A stretch of 64,000 nt of DNA from contig JALMLS010000579.1 of the NCBI GenBank assembly GCA_038496445.1, positions 443,095 to 507,094 of the forward strand, given 5' to 3'. The translations under genes were made by a program, and so were the position numbers. Below the pieces are notes generated by a model, which saw only the letters and a program-made list of their open reading frames with translations, had not been told where the DNA came from and ran no database searches. Below are positions 2,644 through 46,360 of the stretch, one piece after another. This DNA comes from Trichosphaerium sp. ATCC 40318 (Eukaryota; Protista; Tubulinea). Positions within the stretch are counted from its first letter, which is position 1; every line of letters starts with the position of its first letter.

Positions 2644-5168
2644 TTAATCCCACATATAGTCAAGGCAATGCCTAACTACCTCTGAACCACTAATAGCTTG
2701 AAAATAATCGCCGTGAGGAAATTTCGCCTTATCCTTTCTCATAATAATCTGAGAATCAAATACGCTTTCAGCCTTATCATCAAAGTAAACAGCCAAATCG
2801 CAATTTGTCTCATAGAACATAGTTGATAACTGATATTGTACTAGTCTCTTAGATCGCAATGCTGTCATTTCTTCCTTCTTTTCAACGTAAGCAGTAACCA
2901 ACCTACGGTTCTCATCACTCTCAAAATTTTCTGCAAGTTCATGAGCACAGTAAAAAAAAAAAAGCAACAAAAACATACCAAGGTGCGCTATGTCCTTCAG
3001 GAACATAATAAACTCTTCTATGCTGGCTATACCATTATTGATGCCTACTCCTAAACGATAGTGTGCTGTTACTTGAGCGTCACCTACTATAAATACAGGA
3101 AGAGGCGGAAAGAGGTCTTTAACGATTAGTTTCGAAGAGGTAGCCCTGTTACTTGTTAAAAAATGTTCACAGGACTAAGTCGTACGCTTTGTTAATAACA
3201 ATGTCTATCACATCTATATTAAGAGTTCCGTCTTTCTTGATATCAATACTGTCTATTAAGCTATTGATATTGTCGAATGGCTCAGCAAACAATGTACTAG
3301 TAACCTCAAATAACTTGGACAAAATTATATTTCTAGAAAAAAGTAAGAAAATAATTACTACAACATTTATGAACCGCATACGTATTATCAGGGTCATTAG
3401 ATGCGTAACTATCTATTGAATCTAAAGAACCTATGACATCCTTGAAATAACACTGTTAGCAGTTTATTGTGGAACAATATCACACCTTGCCAGTGTCACC
3501 ATCAAACACTATATGAAAAAAGAGTAAGAAAATGATATCTTTCATGTTCTTATGTGTACGTATTTGTAAATGACAGATACCATGATAAAATCTTGTGAAA
3601 ACAATAGAAACACCTTATAAAGTATATAAATAATATTATGAGGACAAAAAAAATAGCTTACCATCCACGACAAATCCAATCATAGCTTGGTTTATTTTTT
3701 TTGATAATTGAGGACATTTATCATTAAACGACTTGAAGTACACAAGCAAGGTCGTTTGTTTCAAGTCTAAAAACCTTTAGCTGCTACAAAGCAAACAAAC
3801 AACTTGAAGCCAATGAGTACCTTCTACTGTACGTTCTATACCGTTCTCAATGAAAAACTCACTTTGTTGTGTAAATGGTATATCAGCCCACTGACGCACG
3901 GCACTTTGTGTACCATCAGCACCTATATAAAATAATCTTAGTACTTAATATACCACCAAGTGAGCATTCATACCAACAAGAATATCAAACTTCAAAGTAG
4001 CTGAAGTCTCACTACAGTCTGGTTCTTTGATATCGTTATCTTTCAAATCCTTCAGCAGAGCTTCATATTTATTGTTGTTGCCTCGTTACAAAGTTAAAAG
4101 AAAAACAAAGGTTAAAAATGTGTTACCTGTCTTCTCACATACTCCTATGAATGACGTATTGAAACGTATGTCTACACCAATAGCAAAAGCTATTTTTGCT
4201 AGAAAACGTTCTAATTCATTGCACCTGAAAGTACGTATTTTGTGACCGCCAAACATCTCTTCTGTGTACTTTAGGTGTTGATGTGAGATACCTAGATCAT
4301 CTAACAAAGTGACCGCAGGATACCTGCACATTATAAGCCATCACTTCAACAATAATAAAAAGCACAAACCACGCTTTTGGCCCGACATCAAACCACGTGT
4401 TACGCGTATAAGCACCACGTTTTTCAATAAGAGTCACTTTATAACCTTCTCTCCTAGCTGCTATAGCATGTACAAGACCTATCGGGCCTCCACCTTACTG
4501 GAGTTATCGAATTAGATATCTGCTGTAAAAGCATACCGACAACGAGTATGTGTTTGTTGTGTACGCTCAATAACTCTGTTGGAAGTTTCTGAGGGTGTTA
4601 GCGAGCGTTAGGGAAGAACTGATTACCACATAAGCGATCAGCTGAAGAACAAATTGGCGAAGTTGTTGAAGAGCCAGTGAAAGGTCCACCAGAGATTCAG
4701 ACGCAACAGTTTCGCGTTCTTCACTTAAGACACAGTCATTGAGGTCGTTTTGGAGCTGTTCAACTACGCTATCGCTTGTTTCTGGTACACATTTAACTCA
4801 TTGTGTGACTAGAGGCCGTACGTGATAAGAAGACGCGTAAAACAGTATGTTTGCTGGGATTCTTAAATAGCGCCAGAAATAAGTCCTGTATCAAATGGTT
4901 GAGTGCGCACATTAGCTCACTGTACGCACACGCAAAACCCTCAAAGATTTTAAAGCTGGTGGAGGTTAAATTTCAGTTATAAAATACTCAGTACCATCTG
5001 TATCTACGTTCAGAGCCGCACGAACGTTATCGTACAACTTGTTTTGTGTAATAAAGTCACTAACCTGATACTTAGCGTTAATGTACCACAAACAATACGC
5101 CGGCGTGCCCATGTACAGTTTTGAGCGTTGACAACTGTAAAAATTACTACAAAGAGCAATAGTCTCAT
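2644..5168 (-). CDS. FAD-dependent monooxygenase (MICAL/PHBH-like), multi-exon, with N-terminal signal peptide
   Basis: GGGPIGLVHAIAARREGYKVTLIEKRGAYTRN (Rossmann GxGxxG), LERFLAKIAFAIGVDIRFNTSF, FDILVGADG (DG motif) and VFIVGDAQVTAHYRLGVGINNG (GD motif). ATG 5168 gives MRLLLFVVIFTVVNAQ. 5' exon joins are uncertain. Confidence 0.8.
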
Positions 5169-5325
5169 AGCGGGTCCTAATTAAATTCTACGCTCAGGAG
5201 ATGCTCCTCACCCTTTTATTTGTTTATCTAGTTTTGAGTATTTTCTCTGATCAAAAACTGTGCTTCGCTTAAAGTTAGTACGCAAATTACTCTAATACGC
5301 ACAAGACTAAGCACAAGAATATAAA

Positions 5326-7243
5326 ATGGCAAAGTTCGTTGATGGTACGCACCTGTAATGTTGTCTTTCGTTAACGCAAACAGTTGGATTTGTTTGGCCC
5401 TATGGAGGCAAAAAAGTACTTCTAGCAGGAAGCTGGGACTGGTCCAAACGCATACAAACTAAAAAAGGCCGTAAGTGGATAAAAATAACGTGCCAGTTGC
5501 GTTGTTCTTCTTACAATCTATAAGGTGGTGCACATACAGCAATAATGAGCTTGTCAGCAGCTAATCCGATTCAATACAAGTTCATTGTTGATGACGTTTG
5601 GTACGTAGATTGACAGTGTCCCCATAGCGTTTCTGTAGCGACAAAGACCTAACTCAAGACATACAGGTGCTACGATATTACAAAACCAACGATTAGAGCT
5701 CCGAATGGAGCTATAAATAACATACTCACTAAAGAAAAACTTGCTAAAAAAAGGACAACAGACGATGGCTCTTTAAAGTTCCGTGTACGAGTTTACTTGT
5801 AATTTACTCTACCACGTGTTGACATGTGATTATTAGCGATTCCCAAGCATAGAGAACTCTTCATTGCAAGAATTTTACGAACAAGTAAGTATAAAACACA
5901 ACCAACAGCTCCGGCTTGTGCTAACGAGCTGGTTTAGATTATGATTGAAAACAAAGATGGTGGCGAGTGGGTGATGACAGAAAAAGGTGCGGATGAGAAT
6001 AATCCTACGTCGTAGTGTGCCTAACAGCTGTATAGTACACGGAGCTAATTTCTCATTTGCAACAAATGGAGAAGAAATTTTGAGTTGCAAACGTACTTCT
6101 TCCCTTACCGACAAAGACAGGTTCTACCCTGGTACGGCAATGCTAATATGGCTTCTAAACACTCAAATTTATATTAAAACTTCTGAAGGTTGGGAGAAAA
6201 TTTTACAGGCTCATTCAGAGCGCCTTAAAAAATTGTTTTCTTTGGTTAAAGAAGAGCTTTCTGAAGAAAAGGATGAAGTCAAATCAATAGTGGTATACGG
6301 AGAATTTTGCGGTGGATTTTATCCGCACAAGGACGTTCAAAATATTGAAGGTATCAAATATGTACAAAAAGGCCTTTGGTACGTAGTACAGCAATATGAA
6401 AAATAAGTTTTCTCACACTTTGTCAAAAGGTATTCTCCAAAGTTCGAATTCTATGGGTTTGACATCTATGTGCCTCGTCATAGCTTCCTTAACTATGACC
6501 TTACAACAAAACTATTTGAGAAAGCTGGATTTTTGTATAATAAAGCTCTACAAAGAGGTACATACCAATAGATGATAAAAAAACTAAATGTACCAGGCAC
6601 TCTAAAAGAATTACTAAAGTTCGATGTTGAAACTTTTGAAAGTGTGATTCCAAGTTACCTTGGGCTTCCAAAGATTGAAGGAAACTTGGCTGAAGGTGTT
6701 GTCATCAAACCTGTAATTAACCGGTATTTGAATAAGGGTATGTAAAGTATTGATAACGTTGTAGAACTGACACATCAAACAAAATAGGATCACGTATTAT
6801 TTTAAAGAAAAAGAGGTCTTCTTTTGGAGAAGTCTCAAAAGTAAAGAAAGTCAAGCCTCTAAAAGAATTCGTAAAGCTTCCAAAGGAAGCACAGGAACAC
6901 TATGATAATTTAATACGTTATATCACTGAAAATAGGCTAAATGCAGTCATGTCAAAGGTACGACAAAGTCGAATAAAATGAATATTTGTAACAAAATCTA
7001 GGTTGGTCCTCCACAAAATAGGAAAGAAATCGGAAGGCTTGTAGGCATGTTTGGTTCAGGTTCGTTTGAATAATTTTTGCTTAGCTGCTTGCTTACGCAC
7101 TTCTAGACGCCCTTACAGACTTTAAAAAAGACTATCCTTCATTCGCACTGCTGGACAAGCCACTTCAAAAACGCATTACGAAACCATTCAATTCCCGCGT
7201 TGCAAACATGGTAATGAAAATATTCCTTCAATCCAAGGAGTAG
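5326..7243 (+). CDS. CBM48 (AMPK-beta-type glycogen-binding domain) fused to an Rnl2-family ATP-dependent RNA ligase
   Basis: Spliced: MAKFVDVGFVWPYGGKKVLLAGSWDW...QYKFIVDDVWCYDITKP...NGAINNIL (CBM48), then FRRFPSIENS, motif I EWVMTEKVHGANF, Ia SCKRT, III VYGEFCG, VQKGLWYSP, IIIa FYGFDI, IV EGVVIKP, V ILKKKRSSFGE and the C-domain YITENRLNAVMSK...GSDALTDF. All introns are GT-AG and preserve frame. Confidence 0.9.
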
Positions 7244-8717
7244 ATATTTTTATTCACAAAAAAAGTAAACGCCAAACCGTACTTTGTCAAAATAAAGTAG
7301 CGAAAAAAAAATCACAGAAAAAAACGCCTTTGTTGACTTTACTTGATTTGCCCTAAAATTCAGTTTATCGCCATCAAAACACCTAACACAACACATAATG
7401 ACTACAAAATAATTAAGAGAGTGTACTCTTGACAACACTCGGTACGTAGTTCTTTTCTGCCTTTTTCTCAAACGGAAAAAACCGCTGTCGATGATTAGAA
7501 ATACCAATCCGACAGCTTCATACGGTGTTGCTTACGAGGAGATATTGATAATAGTCTTAGACTAATTTTCATCCATCATCGCCCTTTATTCTTCGTCGGC
7601 TTTGTTCGGCTCTTGAACACCTCTCTTACGTCTTATAGGACCATCTCTAAACGATACCGAGCGATTGCATGTTGATTTAACCCAAACAAACCGCAAAAAG
7701 GTACGGAAAGTTTTTCGAAAACAAAACTCTTTCTTTTTGCACGCACCACTACCCAGGAACAAAGAAATAAATTCTTTTTTACCTGTCGTTGGATGCAATA
7801 GAAAAATACGGCATCTAGCGAGACAAGTATGCAATGATATAAACGTTGGCTTGTCCTCATACGTAATCCACATTCTCAAACAAGAAAACTAAAGATTCTC
7901 AATCTTTTTCTCAATATCGTTTTCTTACTCTACAAAAGGTTTGTCCAACGCAAAGTGCCACCACTGCGCTCCGCACTGATCACTACGTGACATAGCGCCT
8001 TTTTAGCCACTTGAAGCGCTTACTTATCCACACGTTGGCTGATGGTTGTCTACTCGCACATAATATTGCGTAGTAGCTCCCTCAGTTATCGTTGGTGGTG
8101 TAGGTAGCCTTCCTTGCTTTGTAACACCCTCTAACTTGAAACTAAAACGTACGTGCTCCTTTTGGTTTGAAATCGCTTTTCTTCCTTCTTCTTCAAACAT
8201 GCAGTCTATGATGTGCTATTCGCCATGATCCTCTGAATCTAATGAAGTGACTTACGAAGGCTGAGACCATAAAACATCCCTTTGAAAACAATTCTTGCTT
8301 TACTCGAACTTTGCATCTTTTCAACTGTTCGGCAGTATTTCTTAGATATTGTTTAGGATATCCTTGTCAGCCTACATAAAAGATGCTCATCTAGAAGATT
8401 TACATCGTTCATTCAACTGAAATGAATTGATAATAATCTGTCTTGAAAAAGGACGTTTCGGTCAAACATACTTGTATTTATTTGTTATGATAAAATAAAA
8501 CTAGTCACCAAACTGTTGCCTTTTTTATCTGTGCCTTACTGTATCGACTGTTACTATGCGACAAAAGACCTATTTTATTTTGATTCTCAATTTTCTCATG
8601 TGTAAAGTATTGGTGACCCGGTTACTCTGTTCTGCATCATTTTTCTGTTGTCTTGTTGGTCGCAAAAAGGCTTCGCCGAGAATGATATTGATTTTGTCTG
8701 GTTTGTAAAAAAAGTGT

Positions 8718-11700
8718 ATGGAACCAAAAGTGGATCGCATACACATGTAATAAATACCTGTTAGGTTTATTTAATGGATAGGTATTGGACTGTGGGCGAG
8801 GTATGCGGATGGCTAGAAAGTGTGGGTCTTGGACAAATCTCCAATGACGCAAGGTAAGCATAGTCGCTTAAAACGACTAAAAACAACAAGGAGACTTGAA
8901 TTAAACGGGAAACAATTGCTGGAGTTAACGAGTGCTAAAATAAGCGAAACAATGTCTATTAACGCTAGTACGCACTTAAAACGTAATGACTGCTTGCATG
9001 TTTATGTTTATATTAGCTTTGCACGTGTCTCTGTTACGAGAAATTTCAAAGCTACAAAACGTCCTGAACTCGAAGCAAACACAAGTCTTTAGCTTTCAAG
9101 TGCGTGTTACGGCTCAACATAATTATTTGCGCTTAGCTGGCCCATTTTTTTTTTGAGAATCGACTTCATTGCTCACACTGTTACCAAAAAACTCGCTTTA
9201 CTTTTGGGTTATTTCGGCTATTTGGTCACTTGTAAAGCGCAATATCACATGCAACAAAAGCTTATTGACAAAATATTCATAGGAGAACACCACAATCAAC
9301 GAGACACCAGATGTACAACCAATCACACAGAGAAAACACCAAACTTCAACAAACACACCCACATCAGCGTCAGATGAAGAACTAAATCCATCTACTAATC
9401 CAAATGCAAACAGAGCACAGTCACTAGATACTCAGCAACCTAAAAAAAAGAGAAAACACCTATTTTCACCTACAGCGAGAGCTCCAAGTTCAATTGCATG
9501 TGTACGGTATTATTTTTCGATTTAGAAAAACTTACTTGTTCACAAGGTAAATGACAAAGTACCATTGGAAGTGCTTGTACACATATTAAACTTTGTAACA
9601 ATATATGAGCATGAGACGTGTAAATTAACATGCCACTACTGGCTTGATATATGCCAACGATACCTCTTTAAAAGAATTACTCTTTCAGGCAAGCTGTTGT
9701 GTGAACTTTTAAGTATCACTCTAATAATGTGTAAGGAAATGATACACTTGCGTCTGCTACTAAAAATATAAACAAGTCATCAATTAATTATCTATGTTTT
9801 ATTCTGAAACGAAGGAACATTGATTTCTTGAACGAGTTGAGCAAAATGGCAGTGGACTTTAAACATCTTCAATCACTGGTATGAAAAACAGCTAGTTACA
9901 AAAGCGCAGCTCTTTTGAGTGTACTCTCTAACAATCAAGTATAGACGATCAAGGATAATTCATTTGCATGTCTTGTACAACTTGTTTGATTTGAAAAAAA
10001 AATAAGTATACTTACTCTTACGAAGACTTCATGGCATTGGCTTAATGGAGTAATGACCAGGTGCCCTATAACATCTCTTAAAGCTGTGAGTCCTCGTCCT
10101 TTGGGCGATAAGCTTCTTGGATATGGCAAAGGGTACACTTCAAGGTGAAACGTAACAACTGAATGTTTTTGTAAAAAGGCAGCTGAGTCGTTTAAAACAG
10201 TTGATATGCACTATACGTACCACAAATAGGGATCTGTTTAGAAAGCTTTCTTTGAAGGAGTATGTTTTTTTTTGGTTTTGAGTAATGAACTAACTTCAAA
10301 TAGGTTGGTTCACTTGGAAATAGACACAAGAGATATGACAATAAGTCAAACGTCAATGCTTGATTCATTCAAAAAAATGTCAAAACTTAAACTGCTTCAG
10401 TTTCATTTAAATGACAAGGCTCGAGTCAGTTCTACATTAATTCTACCTAAAGTAACGTAAGTGTATTTCCTGTATGTAGATACATGTTTACATTTCTTAG
10501 AGCGCTAAAGATATCAGCTAGTTTTTCAGTCATAATAACACAGTTTATTGTGCCAAACTTAATTATATTGGCACTTGATAACATTAAAAGCAATGCCCTG
10601 ATACAAGTGAGTCATAGATTTTACATTGCCAATATTCAAAGTTGCATTGCAGGTATTCCCACAGCTCATGAGACAAATTAAGATATTGCAAGTAAGGAAA
10701 AGCAAACTACCAGAAAGTATTGGATCAAATACACTTGAGACGTTCAACTGTGACCACTGTCCAGAGCTTGTAAGTTTTAACTAGTACTCCCTGTTAATTA
10801 TTTAATAGAAAAAGCTGTATACACCACATCTCAAACAAGTTCATCTGGAACACAAGTTGGATGTGTATTATCCTCTTTTACAAATCGGTTCATTCAATAC
10901 AACATTGTTTTCCCCTATAGACTTGCTTTCACCGTCTCTCAAAGTTATGCACTGGCACTCAATATCACTTTGTGAAGAGTGGTGGCATGCTTTATCATTG
11001 TTACCATTAGAATATATTTCAGTGCAACATGGAGATGGCATAAGTAACATTAAGAACTTGCCAACATTGAAGTACCTTTCTTTCATATCCACGTCACAAG
11101 ACACGATATCTCATGACAAACTTGAGTATATTCACAAAAAAAAGTATGGCGGACAACAGCCATTCACACTTTTTGATTGTCCTTTGTTGGTATGTTAGTT
11201 CTTATCAAGGGTTTTTTGTGGCTAACATTGTCTACTTAGAGGGAGTTATGTGTTGAACGCTCTGTATTTCCTAGCTTCTCACGGAGAACAAGAAATATAA
11301 GACACCTTGAGATCAAAAACACATCTCACTACAAGTGCCGAGCAATCCAAAAACTTTTACAACTTGAAGTACTTATTATTAAAACAGTTGTTTGTGGATG
11401 TGAAATGTTCATTGCCAATACAACTCTCAAAACCTTAAGTACAAGCAAAATACAATTATTTGACTCTTTCACTACTAATGTGATTAACCAATGGTAGAAC
11501 TTGAAGACATTTCTGCAGAAACCGTGGAATTAAACACACCTCAGTTGTGCTTTTTGTCTTTAACTGGGTCAGACTGTGTCACAAACATTATTTGGGGTAC
11601 AGAACCTATGACTAATCTAAAGACAATGTTACTTGGTAACAATGACTCTCTTGATGACAGATCGTTTGTGGGACCTTTTGATAAATTCCCATTCCCTTCT

Positions 11701-12135
11701 TTATCGTTCTTGAGTCTAAAATATACACAAATCACGTCACTAACTTTGAATCAAATTGAAACAAATTGTCCTAATATAAACATGGTATGCTTGACTCAAA
11801 TTTGTAATTTACACCTTAGTCTCTGGATCAATTCCACTGGTCTTATTTAACATCGTAATAGATAGAGTATTGTTATTATGAGAACAACAAGCAAAACATT
11901 CAAAAACTTAAAGCATTTCAAGCGATTATCAAAAGGATAACTGGCAAAGAAAAAATAGAGGATAGAGACAAACCAAAAGCACCAATAGCTGAATATACAA
12001 AAGCACACGAGTATGTCAAGATGTTGGACACAAACACTTGGACACCATTCACCACTTTTACTAAGCCTTGACAGCAAAGGTGTACTATCGACTGGCGTCC
12101 TTAAACGATATGTCAACCGATATAATGCAAAATAA
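8718..12135 (+). CDS. SAM domain + F-box + leucine-rich repeat protein, multi-exon
   Basis: WTVGEVCGWLESVGLGQ...LNGKQLLELTS...LLREISKL (SAM), VPLEVLVHILNFVT...CKLTCHYWLDIC (F-box), then many LxxLxL exons (LPTLKYLSF, MTNLKTMLL, FPSLSFLSL). The exon near 9157-9280 is uncertain. Confidence 0.75.
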
Positions 12136-33517: not shown

Positions 33518-35102
33518 ATGGCTGGAGCAATGCTTAAACATCCTGAACGTAAGAGTGGACTCAGTGAGTACCGCCTACTAGGCAAATCAGGTATGACATG
33601 AAAAGGTACAGCTTTTTTCTTAACTTACACTTCAGGTCTTCGCGTATCGCCTCTTTGCTTGGGTACAATGACATGGGGACAAAATTGGAAAGCTTTCGGT
33701 ACGTTTTTCTCTTAGCTTAACCTGATTGATAAATAACGACTTGAAGGTATCCACATGGACAAAGAAGAAGCCAAGAAGGTTTTTACCCATTTCGTTGCTG
33801 AAGGTGGTAATTTCTTTGATACCGCAGTCAATTACCAAAACGGACAATCCGAAGAGTGGTTGGGTGAGTTTATGGAAGAAGCTGGTAACCGCGAAGAGGT
33901 ATGCATTGACGATAAAAAAACTGTATTGTATTTTAAAAAACCGTAAAAACTGCCATTGTATTCATGCGAAAGTTGAAGACTCATTTTCGTATTATAGCTC
34001 GTCATTGCCACTAAGTTTAGTGGCCCAAATCTTGGTACTCCTATGAATATTAACTTCGCTGGTAATGGGCTCAAGAATATGATGTATTCAGTAGACCTAT
34101 CGTTGAAGAGATTGAAAACAACATACATTGTACGTCAAACTACACCTTTTTAAAACATTCACGTGCTAATATTTGTAAGGATCTTCTATATGTACATGTA
34201 TGGGACTACACTACACCTATCGAAGAAGTGATGCGTGGTTTGGATACTTTGGTAAGTAATAAATAATACAAAAATAGATAGAAATTTGTGAATTGTTGTA
34301 TGTTAATTAACAAACTTTCAATGTAGGTTCGCTCTGGTAAAGTTCGATACATTGCGATCTCTGATACACCAGCTTGGGTTGTTTCTTATGCTCAAGCAAT
34401 CGCTGATAAATATGGATGGACGTACGTGTGCTCTTGAGTGTTTTATACCAGTCTTCTGTTTACGACGTTTTGATTTTCTGTTAGCAAGTTTATCGCCTAT
34501 CAAGGCCGCTACAACGTTGGTGATAGAGATTTCGAAGCTGATGTAATACCTATGTCCCTCCAAATGGGTCTTGGTGGAGTACCATGGGCAGTTCTTGGTG
34601 GAGGAAAGTTTACTGGAAGATTTTTGCGTGGACAAGAGGTATGTCTTTGCAATAGTCAGAGAAAAATGTACTAAGGTATCTTAAAGGCAGGAGAAGGTCA
34701 AAGAATGGTTCAAATGAGTGAAAAGGACTACGACATTGCTGATGAACTTGTCAAAATCTCAAAAGAACTTGGATGTACTCCTTCTCAAGTTTCATTGAAC
34801 TGGGCACTTCAACAACGTGGTATCACATCCGCTCTTGTTGGTATTTCAAAAGTTCGTCATTTGAAGGATAACATTGGTGCTTTGGAGAGTAAATTCAGAC
34901 TCACTAAAGGTAACGTTTTTATCTCTTTTTGACAGAAGACTTTGGAACTAACACGTGATTTTTACTATGAATAGATCACATGGAACGTTTGGCTAAGGTT
35001 GTTGACTACAAAGTACCTTTCCCACATAGCATGTTGGGTGGCACTAAAACAAGTGAAATCTATTGGATTAAACCTGCTGGCAAGATTGTTGACGACTATT
35101 AA
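33518..35102 (+). CDS. Aldo-keto reductase (aryl-alcohol dehydrogenase-like), multi-exon
   Basis: YRLLGKSGLRVSPLCLGTM, GGNFFDTAVNYQNGQSEEWLG, VIATKF, SLKRLKTTYIDLLYVHVWD, VRSGKVRYIAISD and PSQVSLNW. Confidence 0.93.
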
Positions 35103-35395
35103 TTAGTGTCTAGACACTAAATAAAACGACCAGTTAAATGTATGGAATGGGCAACAGGCTATGACATAGAATGCAAGTGTAAATCAACACAAGTTCCTAT
35201 ACTTCTTTTAGAGCGATGTCGTGAACAATAAAGCATTTATCTGCCACGTACTTGTTTACCTAAAAATAAGGCTTCTGTTAACAGACTTCCAAAGGTAAAA
35301 TTCTTTCCTAGGCTGCAAATACTAAGTTAAGTCTGGTAAACCTGTATGCCAGCAAAAGACATACCAATTCATTTAAATAATTTTCATCGTGTCTT

Positions 35396-45247: not shown

Positions 45248-46360
45248 CCATATTTTTAGACAAGTACGTGGTAGATAAATGCTTTATTGTTCAGGACATC
45301 GCTCTAAAAGAAGTATAAGAACTTGAGCTGATTTACACTTGCATTCTATGTCATAGCCTATAGACCTGCTCATTCCATACATTTAACTAGACTAATTAAT
45401 AGTTGGCAACAATCTTGCCAGCAGGTTTAATCCAATAGATTTCATTTGTTTTAGTACCACCCAACATGCTATGTGGGAAAGGTACTTTGTAGTCAACAAC
45501 CTTAGCCAAACGTTCCATGTGATCTATTCATAGTAAAAATCACGTGTTAGTTCCGAAGTCTTCTCTCAAAAAGAGATAAAAACGTTACCTTTAGTGAGTC
45601 TGAATTTACTCTCCAAAGCACCAATGTTATCCTTCAAATGACGAACTTTTGAAATACCAACAAGAGCAGATGTGATACCACGTTGTTGAAGTGCCCAGTT
45701 CAATGAAACTTGAGAAGGAGTACATCCAAGTTCTTTTGAGATTTTGACAAGTTCATCAGCAATGTCGTAGTCCTTTTCACTCATTTGAACCATTCTTTGA
45801 CCTTCTCCTGCCTTTGCGATACCTTAGTACATTTTTCTTTGACTATTGCAAAGACATACCTCTTGTCCACGCAAAAATCTTCCAGTAAACTTTCCTCCAC
45901 CAAGAACTGCCCATGGTACTCCACCAAGACCCATTTGGAGGGACATTGGTATTACATCAGCTTCGAAATCTCTATCACCAACGTTGTAGCGGCCTTGATA
46001 GGCGATAAACTTGCTAACAGAAAATCAAAACATCGTAAACAGAAGACTGGTTTAAACTGTATATAAACACTCAAGAGCACACGTACGTCCATCCATATTT
46101 ATCAGCGATTGCTTGAGCATAAGAAACAACCCAAGTTGGTGTATCAGAGATTGCAATATATCGAACTTTACCAGAGCGAACCTACATTGAAAGTTTGTTA
46201 ACAACATACAACAATTCAACAAATTTCTATTTGTATCTAATTTTGTATTATTTATTTCTATATGTACACATATGGGATTACACCACACCTATTGAAGAAG
46301 TGATGCGTGGTTTGGATACTTTGGTAAGTAATAAAATAATATAAAATTAGATAGAAATTT
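45248..46360 (-). pseudogene. Inverted partial duplication of the 3' half of the aldo-keto reductase gene, introns retained
   Basis: 45248-46256 is the reverse complement of about 34258-35272 (same 75-aa ORF in the track). 46258-46360 copies about 34186-34287 in direct orientation. The 5' exons are absent. Confidence 0.93.

Follow-up and report, generated by a model that had tools for sequence, protein, structure and literature searches.

The three-step mechanism of Rnl2-type RNA ligases, their preference for nicks in duplexes, the role of their C-domain and the signature histidine two residues past the lysine have been described (PMC1807946). T4 RNA ligase 2 (gp24.1/RnlB; PDB 1S68, 2HVQ-2HVS) consists of a nucleotidyltransferase domain and an Rnl2-specific helical C-domain and has no N-terminal module. 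The kinetoplastid ligases REL1 and REL2 (PDB 1XDN) also belong to the Rnl2 family; they are mitochondrial, act in the editosome together with OB-fold partners and possess REL-specific loops (PMC4599027).

A different group of proteins uses modules of the CBM48/CBM20 class as a glycogen or starch address for an otherwise unrelated part. This design is found in the AMPK beta subunit, and the plant proteins SEX4 and PTST as well as laforin likewise combine a starch/glycogen-binding module with an effector. The effectors of these known glucan-targeted proteins are kinase complexes, phosphatases or scaffolds that act on the glucan or on its metabolism. In the stretch of DNA analysed here (64 kb in its whole length, hereafter the window), by contrast, the effector is an RNA ligase: one gene encodes a single, expressed fusion protein with a CBM48-like head and an Rnl2 ligase. 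The protein has the same two-domain core as T4 Rnl2, to which the CBM48 head and a linker, together 97 residues, have been added.

Gene structure and transcript

The gene model, rebuilt from the sequence, has a CDS of 1317 nt, which comprises 438 codons and the TAG stop, and all of its introns (12/12) are of the GT..AG type and 39-66 nt in size (Table 1). The initial annotation had joined CBM and ligase by frame-preserving GT-AG introns and had remarked that the ORF track hides the gene almost entirely. Both statements proved correct. The ORF list contains no single ORF that covers 5326-7243, and all 12 joints occur in spliced contigs. In run X3, a single contig of 1460 nt extends from 5200 to 7239 with 12/12 introns spliced out. 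Runs X1, X2 and X4 yielded subsets of the X3 joints, including 5784>5837, which connects the CBM-bearing exon 4 with the ligase exons. Because all 12 joints lie on one spliced contig, CBM and ligase are parts of one mRNA and not of separate transcripts, which was the outcome of the transcript check proposed with the annotation. The reading that the CBM ends and the ligase starts within exon 4 was correct as well: this exon encodes ...NGAINNIL, the linker and LKFR|RFPSIEN. As the linker (KEKLAKKRTTDDGS-type) sits within this exon, the fusion point does not coincide with an intron.

The transcribed 5' UTR contains an out-of-frame uORF of 23 codons, which starts at 5201, and an in-frame stop five codons 5' of the ATG. 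This stop rules out a longer N-terminus or presequence. Intron 7 is in frame and free of stop codons, and therefore seems to be coding in the ORF list; most phmmer matches are broken into two stretches around it. A coding insert at this position is ruled out, since the intron is spliced out in the mRNA and is missing from all homologues. The divergent upstream neighbour of the fusion gene is a FAD/NAD(P)-Rossmann oxidoreductase, and the downstream neighbouring ORF has a weak, sub-threshold LRR match. No functional link of the fusion gene with either neighbour is apparent.

Table 1. Features of the CBM48-Rnl2 fusion gene (positions in the window)
Feature	Position	Strand	Basis or remark
Transcribed 5' UTR	5200..5325	+	X3 contig unspliced over 5200-5343; upstream translation
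Whole coding gene	5326..7243	+	13 exons, 12 GT-AG introns, 438 aa, TAG stop 7241-7243
Exons 1-5	5326-5344, 5384-5470, 5525-5600, 5667-5784, 5837-5884	+	
Exons 6-9	5938-5986, 6036-6131, 6189-6378, 6430-6557	+	
Exons 10-13	6597-6737, 6788-6957, 7002-7059, 7107-7243	+	
Predicted AMPK-beta-type CBM48, residues 7-82	5344..5730	+	PF16561, PDB, Atlas, motif
Linker, ~15 residues (83-97)	5731..5775	+	within exon 4
Rnl2 nucleotidyltransferase domain, residues ~98-333	5776..6834	+	PF09414, TIGR02307, T4 Rnl2 residue map
Motif I Lys132, predicted AMP acceptor (TEKVHGAN)	5983..5985	+	aligned to T4 Rnl2 K35
Intron 6	5987..6035	+	49 nt, phase 1, between EK and VHG
Intron 7	6132..6188	+	57 nt, in frame, stop-free; removed by X3 joint
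Motif III Glu203 (YGEFCGG)	6302..6304	+	aligned to T4 E99
Intron 9	6558..6596	+	39 nt, phase 1, in Gly codon of QRG|T
Motif IV Glu303 (AEGVVIKP)	6692..6694	+	aligned to T4 E204
Motif V Lys324-Lys325-Lys326 (LKKKR)	6805..6813	+	K324, K326 aligned to T4 K225, K227
Rnl2-specific all-helical C-terminal domain, residues ~345-438	6868..7240	+	PF18043, 2HVQ profile match

The ligase core

The ligase part shares 29.6% identity with T4 Rnl2 over 335 residues (E 3e-32). Nucleotidyltransferase motifs I (KxHGxN), Ia, III, IIIa, IV and V, which the two enzymes have in common, are all present in order, and the residue map against T4 Rnl2 upholds the earlier reading that these motifs and the C-domain Arg/Asp residues are intact. 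T-E-K132-V-H134-G-A-N137 aligns with E34-K35-x-H37-G38-x-N40 of the T4 enzyme and includes the Rnl2-signature histidine; the codon that follows Lys132 is split by intron 6. K151 and R152 of motif Ia correspond to T4 K54 and R55, F238 and D239 of motif IIIa to F119 and D120, and R367 and D394 to the R266-D292 pair of the C-domain. Altogether, the ligase has kept counterparts of T4 E34, K35, H37, G38, N40, K54, R55, F65, E99, Q106, F119, D120, R155, S170, E204, K209, K225, K227, R266 and D292. T4 Arg33 is replaced by Thr, which likewise occurs at this position in other protist enzymes and in the Deinococcus enzyme (PMC1807946). Further differences from T4 Rnl2 are a GGxYPHxDV insert after motif III and, ahead of motif IV, the absence of the long loop of the T4 enzyme.

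The resemblance to stand-alone Rnl2 proteins, which start at model residue 97-98 of the fusion protein, is closer. An end-to-end alignment pairs residues 97-435 with residues 1-340 of these proteins (phmmer E 4e-79), and in blastp the E values reach down to 2e-84 at 40-42% identity. All profile evidence for the fusion protein was drawn from separate exon pieces. PF09414 matched exons 7+8 with 28.1 bits (cut-off 27) and gave weaker, colinear matches on exons 9 and 10. For TIGR02307, colinear matches were obtained with four exon pieces (profile positions 33-110, 113-157, 159-201 and 209-263), whose scores sum to ~105 bits (equivalog cut-off 197); exons 5, 6 and 12 had insufficient length for a scan, and exon 13 did not match this profile. 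The C-domain profile PF18043 was found on the exon 11 piece (E 3e-4, 21.3 bits). In phmmer searches of the PDB, the exon 7+8 piece alone retrieved only chance matches to haemagglutinin. When a profile was built from an alignment that included the exon pieces of the window down to exon 11 (profile A2), the PDB matches were TbREL1 (3e-44) and T4 Rnl2 (1.3e-43, full length; residues 3-334 of chain 2HVQ) and no others. The ligase half thus very probably is an active RNA ligase of the Rnl2 type, and it is expected to share with T4 Rnl2 the ATP-dependent sealing of nicks in duplex RNA.

The CBM48 head

The coding sequence of the head runs from the end of exon 1 through exons 2 and 3 into exon 4, of which it takes up the first half. 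Exon 2 matched Pfam PF16561 at profile positions 5-29 of 85 (E 5e-4, 20.7 bits; gathering score 26.8), whereas the exon 3 and exon 4 pieces had no match in Pfam, PDB or Atlas. In the PDB, 14/14 matches to exon 2 were CBMs of AMPK beta. The top Atlas cluster was AMPK1_CBM (0.95), followed by the CBM48, CBM20 and CBM53 clusters. Residues 7-82 look like a CBM48 of the AMPK beta type according to these matches and to the motif Y-K-F-x-V-D-x-x-W, for which the six-frame translation of all 64 kb of the window contains a single instance, at the CBM site. An AMPK beta subunit proper also has a C-terminal region that binds the alpha and gamma subunits. This region is absent, and the window protein is not an AMPK beta subunit because the 15-residue linker and the ligase directly follow the CBM.

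In AMPK beta1, the exchanges W100G and K126Q abolish glycogen binding, and W133L and G147R weaken it (PMC6274970). The putative counterparts in the head are W26, K54, W61, G75 and N78. W26 stands opposite AMPK beta W100 in the HMMER alignment; K54 and W61 lie within Y-K-F-x-V-D-x-x-W and G75 and N78 within G-x-x-N-N, with K54, W61 and G75 placed by reading of the motifs instead of by an alignment program. Tool output shows that K and W are 7 positions apart in AMPK beta1 as well, and the W-to-N spacing of 17 likewise agrees with the beta1 sequence. On this basis, it is slightly more probable than the contrary that the head binds alpha-glucan and localises the enzyme.

Alternatively, the ligase could be active while the head has lost its affinity for glucan and serves as a protein adaptor or as an additional surface for nucleic-acid binding. 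Such a head would be comparable to the N-terminal OB-like module of Rnl5 or to the OB-fold partners recruited by kinetoplastid RELs. It is situated N-terminal to the nucleotidyltransferase domain, where DraRnl has a nick-sensing module (PMC1807946), and the CBM-containing region of AMPK beta reportedly has a protein partner, the glycogen debranching enzyme, to which it binds without the need for glycogen (PMC6274970). At the corresponding place, other members of the protist clade described below have heads that are unrelated. The head is basic, and its net charge of +6 over residues 1-80 would also suit binding to nucleic acids or proteins. In addition, the counterparts of L146 and T148, which we take to be contact residues of AMPK beta1, are altered to Asn and Ala. 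However, W100, K126, W133 and G147 all have counterparts at identical spacing, and there is no indication that any CBM48 binds RNA. A repurposed head is a rather unlikely alternative to glucan binding.

Relatives, ancestry and novelty

The initial annotation had compared the protein with phage and trypanosome ligases. This placed it in the right family but overlooked its nearest kin, an uncharacterised pan-protist Rnl2 clade with members in Arcella, Rhizamoeba, Balamuthia, Leptophrys, Colponema and Naegleria and among MMETSP transcripts (37-43% identity). Members of this clade share with the window ligase the insert after motif III and the start DG-x-LKF-x-K/R-Y/F-x-SIEN. At the N-terminus they possess short tails of acidic or polar character or unrelated extensions, which differ between lineages, and none of them has a CBM. 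Rnl2 proteins of Bacteroidota (NCBIfam TIGR02307; Prevotella, Draconibacterium, Chryseobacterium) are 40-41% identical along the whole ligase and have the same insert after motif III; they are stand-alone enzymes of about 335-345 aa that possess neither introns nor a head. A recent transfer from Bacteroidota was considered because the first best match, P0003, was bacterial. It is ruled out by the careful tree and by the introns shared with Balamuthia. In the careful tree, the window ligase forms a clade with 12/12 named eukaryotic rows (support 99/92), from which the six named Bacteroidota rows are separated at 99/95. The position and phase of intron 6 are common to the Balamuthia gene and a further relative (L002), and those of intron 9 are the same as in intron 3 of Balamuthia. 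Because of this protist clade and the two introns shared with Balamuthia, the ligase core, as judged from tree and gene structure, is an old eukaryotic gene of the pan-protist Rnl2 clade, and the CBM48 head is a later, lineage-specific addition.

The architecture appears to be new, as had been claimed at the outset: the claim survived a search of 425 Rnl2-family proteins and of the literature. None of the fetched relatives (0/425) contains a CBM, and a survey directed at long Rnl2 proteins with several domains did not find one either; some long members of the family have Thg1, PF10021 or NADAR domains instead. The whole spliced fusion protein is missing from all protein collections searched, no relative with a CBM48-Rnl2 fusion was found in the sequences searched, and a metagenome scan with exon 8 retrieved no relative. 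Nothing relevant was found in literature searches for CBM48, AMPK1_CBM or glycogen in combination with Rnl2 or RNA ligase. We know of no link between RNA ligation and glycogen.

Proposed function

With slightly better than even chances, the fusion protein (nuclear-encoded, 438 aa) is a cytosolic, RNA nick-sealing ligase that is held on alpha-glucan by its CBM48 head. According to the mechanism of the family, Lys132 would take AMP from ATP, and the helical C-domain would help to engage a nick in duplex RNA or in an RNA-DNA hybrid. The AMP would then be passed to the 5'-phosphate at the nick and the RNA 3'-OH would attack, sealing the strand in what would be an activity of RNA repair or processing. 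Meanwhile, the CBM48 head, connected to the first ligase strand through the linker of ~15 residues, would hold the ligase on glycogen-like alpha-glucan particles, and the location or availability of the enzyme may follow the state of the glucan store of the cell. Judging from sequence features, it is plausible that ligation is tethered to glycogen in this manner or gated by energy stores.

A more far-reaching and improbable reading regards the head as an address label common to several enzymes, which would constitute a pathway for RNA end-healing and sealing on glycogen particles. The window Rnl2 ligase would be the sealing enzyme of this pathway, and RNA repair capacity would be stored on the glucan reserve and released in starvation or dormancy. 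In an even wider form of the same reading, the protist Rnl2 clade would represent a single repair core whose interchangeable heads direct it to different cellular sites.

It had also been speculated that the adenylyltransferase acts on a substrate other than RNA that the CBM would hold, either by adenylylating phosphate esters of glucans or by joining RNA to glucan. The only argument in favor of this function, namely that an adenylyltransferase is found next to a glucan-binding module, stands against a core that is 40-42% identical over its full length to ordinary stand-alone Rnl2, and against the conservation of all residues that make nick-recognition or nucleic-acid contacts in the T4 enzyme (K54, R55, F65, S170, R266, D292). 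As these and the C-domain residues of Rnl2 have all been kept, they point to an ordinary RNA substrate; the speculation found no support and is very improbable. To our knowledge, no ligase of the superfamily of Rnl2 acts on carbohydrates.

A mitochondrial ligase for RNA editing or trans-splicing of the kinetoplastid REL type is even harder to reconcile with the data, despite the common family and the fact that TbREL1 represents one of only two PDB families matched: the protein lacks a presequence, with the CBM beginning at residue 7 and the transcript containing an in-frame stop before the ATG, and its nearest kin are not RELs but protist enzymes with short polar tails. Finally, a contig across two genes is, taken alone, no proof of a single transcript, but a small CBM48 protein gene and a ligase gene merged by a wrong gene model or in a chimeric contig are hardly credible in view of an ORF unbroken by stops across 13 exons, an exon 4 that alone codes for the CBM end and the first ligase strand, and the same joints in four runs.

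Implications

Outside the editing system of kinetoplastids, it is not known what Rnl2 ligases do in the cell (PMC4599027). A natural addressing head offers a direct hint of the site of action, and perhaps of the substrate, of a eukaryotic Rnl2. If the head were repurposed, it would represent a CBM48 fold with a job other than sugar binding. In practical terms, this Rnl2 is a ready-made and testable tool: its own domain could serve to immobilise it on amylose or glycogen. Should the head bind glycogen, we would know of no earlier RNA-processing enzyme with a glucan-binding module, and the finding would suggest that RNA repair is linked to energy stores or dormancy. The fusion thus hints at a connection between RNA repair and the glucan stores of the cell.

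Gene structure and expression

Three-frame translation of positions 5326-7300 revealed coding blocks that alternate with short GT..AG stretches. When the blocks are joined, 13 exons form an open reading frame of 1317 nt (438 codons), interrupted by 12 introns of 39-66 nt, which mostly start with GTA(C/A)G. Public transcript runs confirmed all 12 exon joints. In run X3, one 1460-nt contig covers positions 5200-7239 with every intron removed, and runs X1, X2, and X4 each contain subsets of these joints, including 5784>5837, which connects the CBM-bearing exon 4 to the ligase exons. Since exon 4 alone encodes the end of the CBM and the start of the ligase, as the initial annotation had stated and the translation confirmed, the two halves cannot be separate genes. 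The CBM-ligase gene thus is real and is one gene; separate mRNAs for the two parts were not what the transcripts revealed, and an artefactual joining of the halves during assembly is unlikely.

The transcribed leader contains a stop in the frame of the ATG, five codons ahead of it, and the protein therefore starts at M1. Intron 7 is in frame and free of stops, so that the ORF list contains an ORF of 139 aa at this place, yet it is spliced out in the transcripts and its residues are absent from homologues. The contigs of runs X1 and X2, which carry another organism code, show two substitutions relative to the window (G>A at 5557 and G>C at 6331); both runs seem to represent a close strain and not a separate species. 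The contigs also have one additional A in the A-run at 5409, which would break the reading frame and probably is a homopolymer error.

The gene upstream of the ligase seems to encode a flavin-dependent oxidoreductase or monooxygenase. Neither this FAD/NAD(P)-Rossmann oxidoreductase nor the downstream ORF with the sub-threshold LRR match offered a functional clue.

Features of the CBM48-Rnl2 gene, its surroundings, and the second Rnl2 copy of Balamuthia mandrillaris
Feature	Position	Strand	Remarks
Upstream gene	~2650-4560	-	Divergent from the ligase gene, contains introns
Exon of upstream gene	4324-4494	-	GxGxxG Rossmann motif; matches NAD_binding_8 and FAD oxidoreductase families
Upstream ORF in transcribed leader	5201-5272	+	23 codons; frame differs from the main ORF
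CBM48-Rnl2 gene	5326-7243	+	
Exon 4	5667-5784	+	Last CBM strand NGAINNIL, linker of ~15 residues, first ligase residues LKFR
Intron 7		+	57 nt
Stop codon	7241-7243	+	TAG
Downstream ORF	11491-11847		Weak, sub-threshold match (E 0.006) to F-box-associated LRR repeats
Inverted repeat (666 nt)	34442-35107 and 45391-46056		98% complementary, 10283 nt between arms; translated pieces are near-identical peptides on opposite strands
Second Rnl2 copy, B. mandrillaris contig JAVKOQ020000093.1 (L004)	L004:3570-4736		Diverged; directly downstream of the Rnl2 gene (tandem pair); 49-81% identity by tblastn piece; called gene with T4_Rnl2_C

The ligase domain

The exon pieces of the ligase match Pfam and NCBIfam profiles in colinear order. 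On exons 7 and 8, PF09414 reaches 28.1 bits (cut-off 27), with weaker matches on exons 9 and 10; PF18043 (T4_Rnl2_C) matches exon 11, and TIGR02307 (RNA ligase, Rnl2 family) matches four pieces, which correspond to the profile stretches 33-110, 113-157, 159-201, and 209-263. Relatives were sought with the piece from exons 7 and 8 among 1.84 billion representative proteins, and the 150 proteins returned were then aligned locally with the spliced model. The stretch 97-435 of the model pairs with residues 1-340 of Rnl2 proteins that stand alone (E down to 4e-79, 40-42% identity), which indicates a ligase complete from the first strand to the last helix. Judged by this alignment, the residues before 97 are an addition to the stand-alone Rnl2 layout.

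The ligase is 29.6% identical to T4 Rnl2 (sequence from the T4 record) over 335 residues (E 3e-32). The T4 residues reportedly identified as essential by mutational work of the Shuman laboratory are conserved, in line with the intact motifs and C-domain residues described in the initial annotation: E34 (window E131), K35 (K132), H37 (H134), G38 (G135), N40 (N137), K54 (K151), R55 (R152), F65 (F162), E99 (E203), Q106 (Q224), F119 (F238), D120 (D239), R155 (R270), S170 (S286), E204 (E303), K209 (K308), K225 (K324), K227 (K326), and the C-domain pair R266 (R367) and D292 (D394). In a PDB search with a profile of protist homologues and the window's exon pieces, only TbREL1 (1XDN, 3e-44) and T4 Rnl2 (2HVQ, 1.3e-43 over residues 3-334; also 1S68) were matched.

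Ancestry of the ligase

The top initial relative, P0003, is a Bacteroidales protein, and a recent gene transfer was therefore considered. Other relatives, with acidic N-terminal tails, stem from eukaryotic transcriptomes or genomes; the eukaryotic sources comprise Arcella, Colponema, Rhizamoeba, Leptophrys, Balamuthia, Naegleria, and MMETSP transcripts. A careful maximum-likelihood tree (51 rows), which provides the comparison with bacterial ligases proposed earlier, groups the window ligase (support 99/92) with all 12 named eukaryotic rows, whereas the six named Bacteroidota rows all fall outside and are split off at 99/95. A quick tree (140 rows) agrees with this placement, which is to the eukaryotic clade as a whole. 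Intron positions are evidence independent of the tree. The related gene on Logan contig L002 is interrupted between EK and VHG by a 37-nt intron that coincides exactly with window intron 6 in position and phase, and two of the four phase-1 introns in the Balamuthia mandrillaris gene match window introns 6 and 9 in position and phase. These shared introns mark the ligase core as an old eukaryotic gene and, together with the eukaryotic clade, argue against recent transfer from Bacteroidota. In other protists of the Rnl2 clade, the N-terminus differs between lineages.

The CBM48-like head

The CBM was scored exon by exon, exons 3 and 4 alone being too short to score. Exon 2 (28 aa) matches positions 5-29 of the 85 in PF16561 (AMPK1_CBM) with E 5e-4; its 20.7 bits lie below the gathering score of the profile (26.8 bits). 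All 14 PDB matches of exon 2 are CBMs of AMPK beta1 or beta2, and its language-model features lie nearest to an AMPK1_CBM cluster (0.95), followed by CBM48, CBM20, and CBM53 clusters. Exons 3 and 4 carry Y-K-F-I-V-D-D-V-W and, 13 residues on, G-A-I-N-N-I-L; across all six reading frames of the window, a pattern of the former type is present a single time, at the CBM site.

W100 of AMPK beta1 pairs with W26 in the HMMER alignment of exon 2 with PDB, and by motif reading K126, W133, G147, and N150 correspond to K54, W61, G75, and N78. At the W133 position, the PDB output for beta1 shows F-V-D-G-Q-W. The spacings (K to W 7, W to N 17) are the same as in beta1, whose full sequence agrees with the pieces in the PDB output. 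The counterparts of L146 and T148 differ in the head (Asn and Ala). In AMPK beta1, W100G and K126Q abolish and W133L and G147R weaken glycogen binding (PMC6274970); the counterparts of all four mutated positions are present in the head.

Distribution of the fusion

No CBM was found on the Rnl2 proteins returned, ten representatives with long N-termini contain ligase domains only, and PF09414 and PF18043 were the only precomputed Pfam domains in word-indexed searches. A search restricted to Rnl2-containing proteins of 363-1155 aa gave 42 proteins, among them fusions to Thg1 (PF04446; P0394, 567 aa), PF10021 (P0414, 674 aa), and NADAR (PF08719; P0417, 826 aa); PF16561 is absent from these 42, and rescanning ten of them under relaxed settings added nothing further. 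An unassigned N-terminal region of ~325 aa precedes Rnl2 in P0116 and P0389 (an MMETSP protein). All these fusions come from metagenomic and protist data. Residues 1-100 had no match among 425 fetched proteins in a maximum-sensitivity local search and motif scan. The survey covered the best-scoring part of the large Rnl2 family, in collections from which the window's own protein is absent. A metagenome scan found no close relative of the window ligase, and a literature search for Rnl2 or RNA ligase paired with CBM48, AMPK1_CBM, or glycogen yielded nothing relevant. The architecture thus was not already characterised in the sources searched: CBM48-Rnl2 combines an established ligase family with a head that is new to it, so far in a single lineage.

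Proposed function

The structural part of the initial annotation, a fusion with an intact ligase, held, and the glucan-tethered RNA ligation it proposed is plausible. Rnl2 enzymes, for which the motif I histidine is a signature, use a three-step mechanism, prefer nicks in duplex RNA or RNA-DNA hybrids, and require the C-domain for nick recognition and 5' adenylylation (PMC1807946). The intact residues suggest ordinary Rnl2 catalysis: ATP would adenylylate Lys132, the C-domain would help to load the nick, AMP would move to the 5'-phosphate, and the 3'-OH would seal the strand. A substrate other than RNA is unlikely.

The short linker would place the CBM48 near the start of the nucleotidyltransferase domain. 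CBM48 and CBM20 modules address AMPK, SEX4, PTST, and laforin to alpha-glucan and, by analogy, the head most likely would give the ligase an address on a glycogen-like alpha-glucan. The main alternative is that the head, which is basic with a net charge of +6, has been converted into a protein- or nucleic-acid-binding module. A role in mitochondrial editing is unlikely; with the CBM starting at residue 7 of a protein that begins at M1, the N-terminus is too short to hold a targeting peptide. An expressed CBM48-Rnl2 fusion offers a handle on the cellular role of eukaryotic Rnl2 enzymes.
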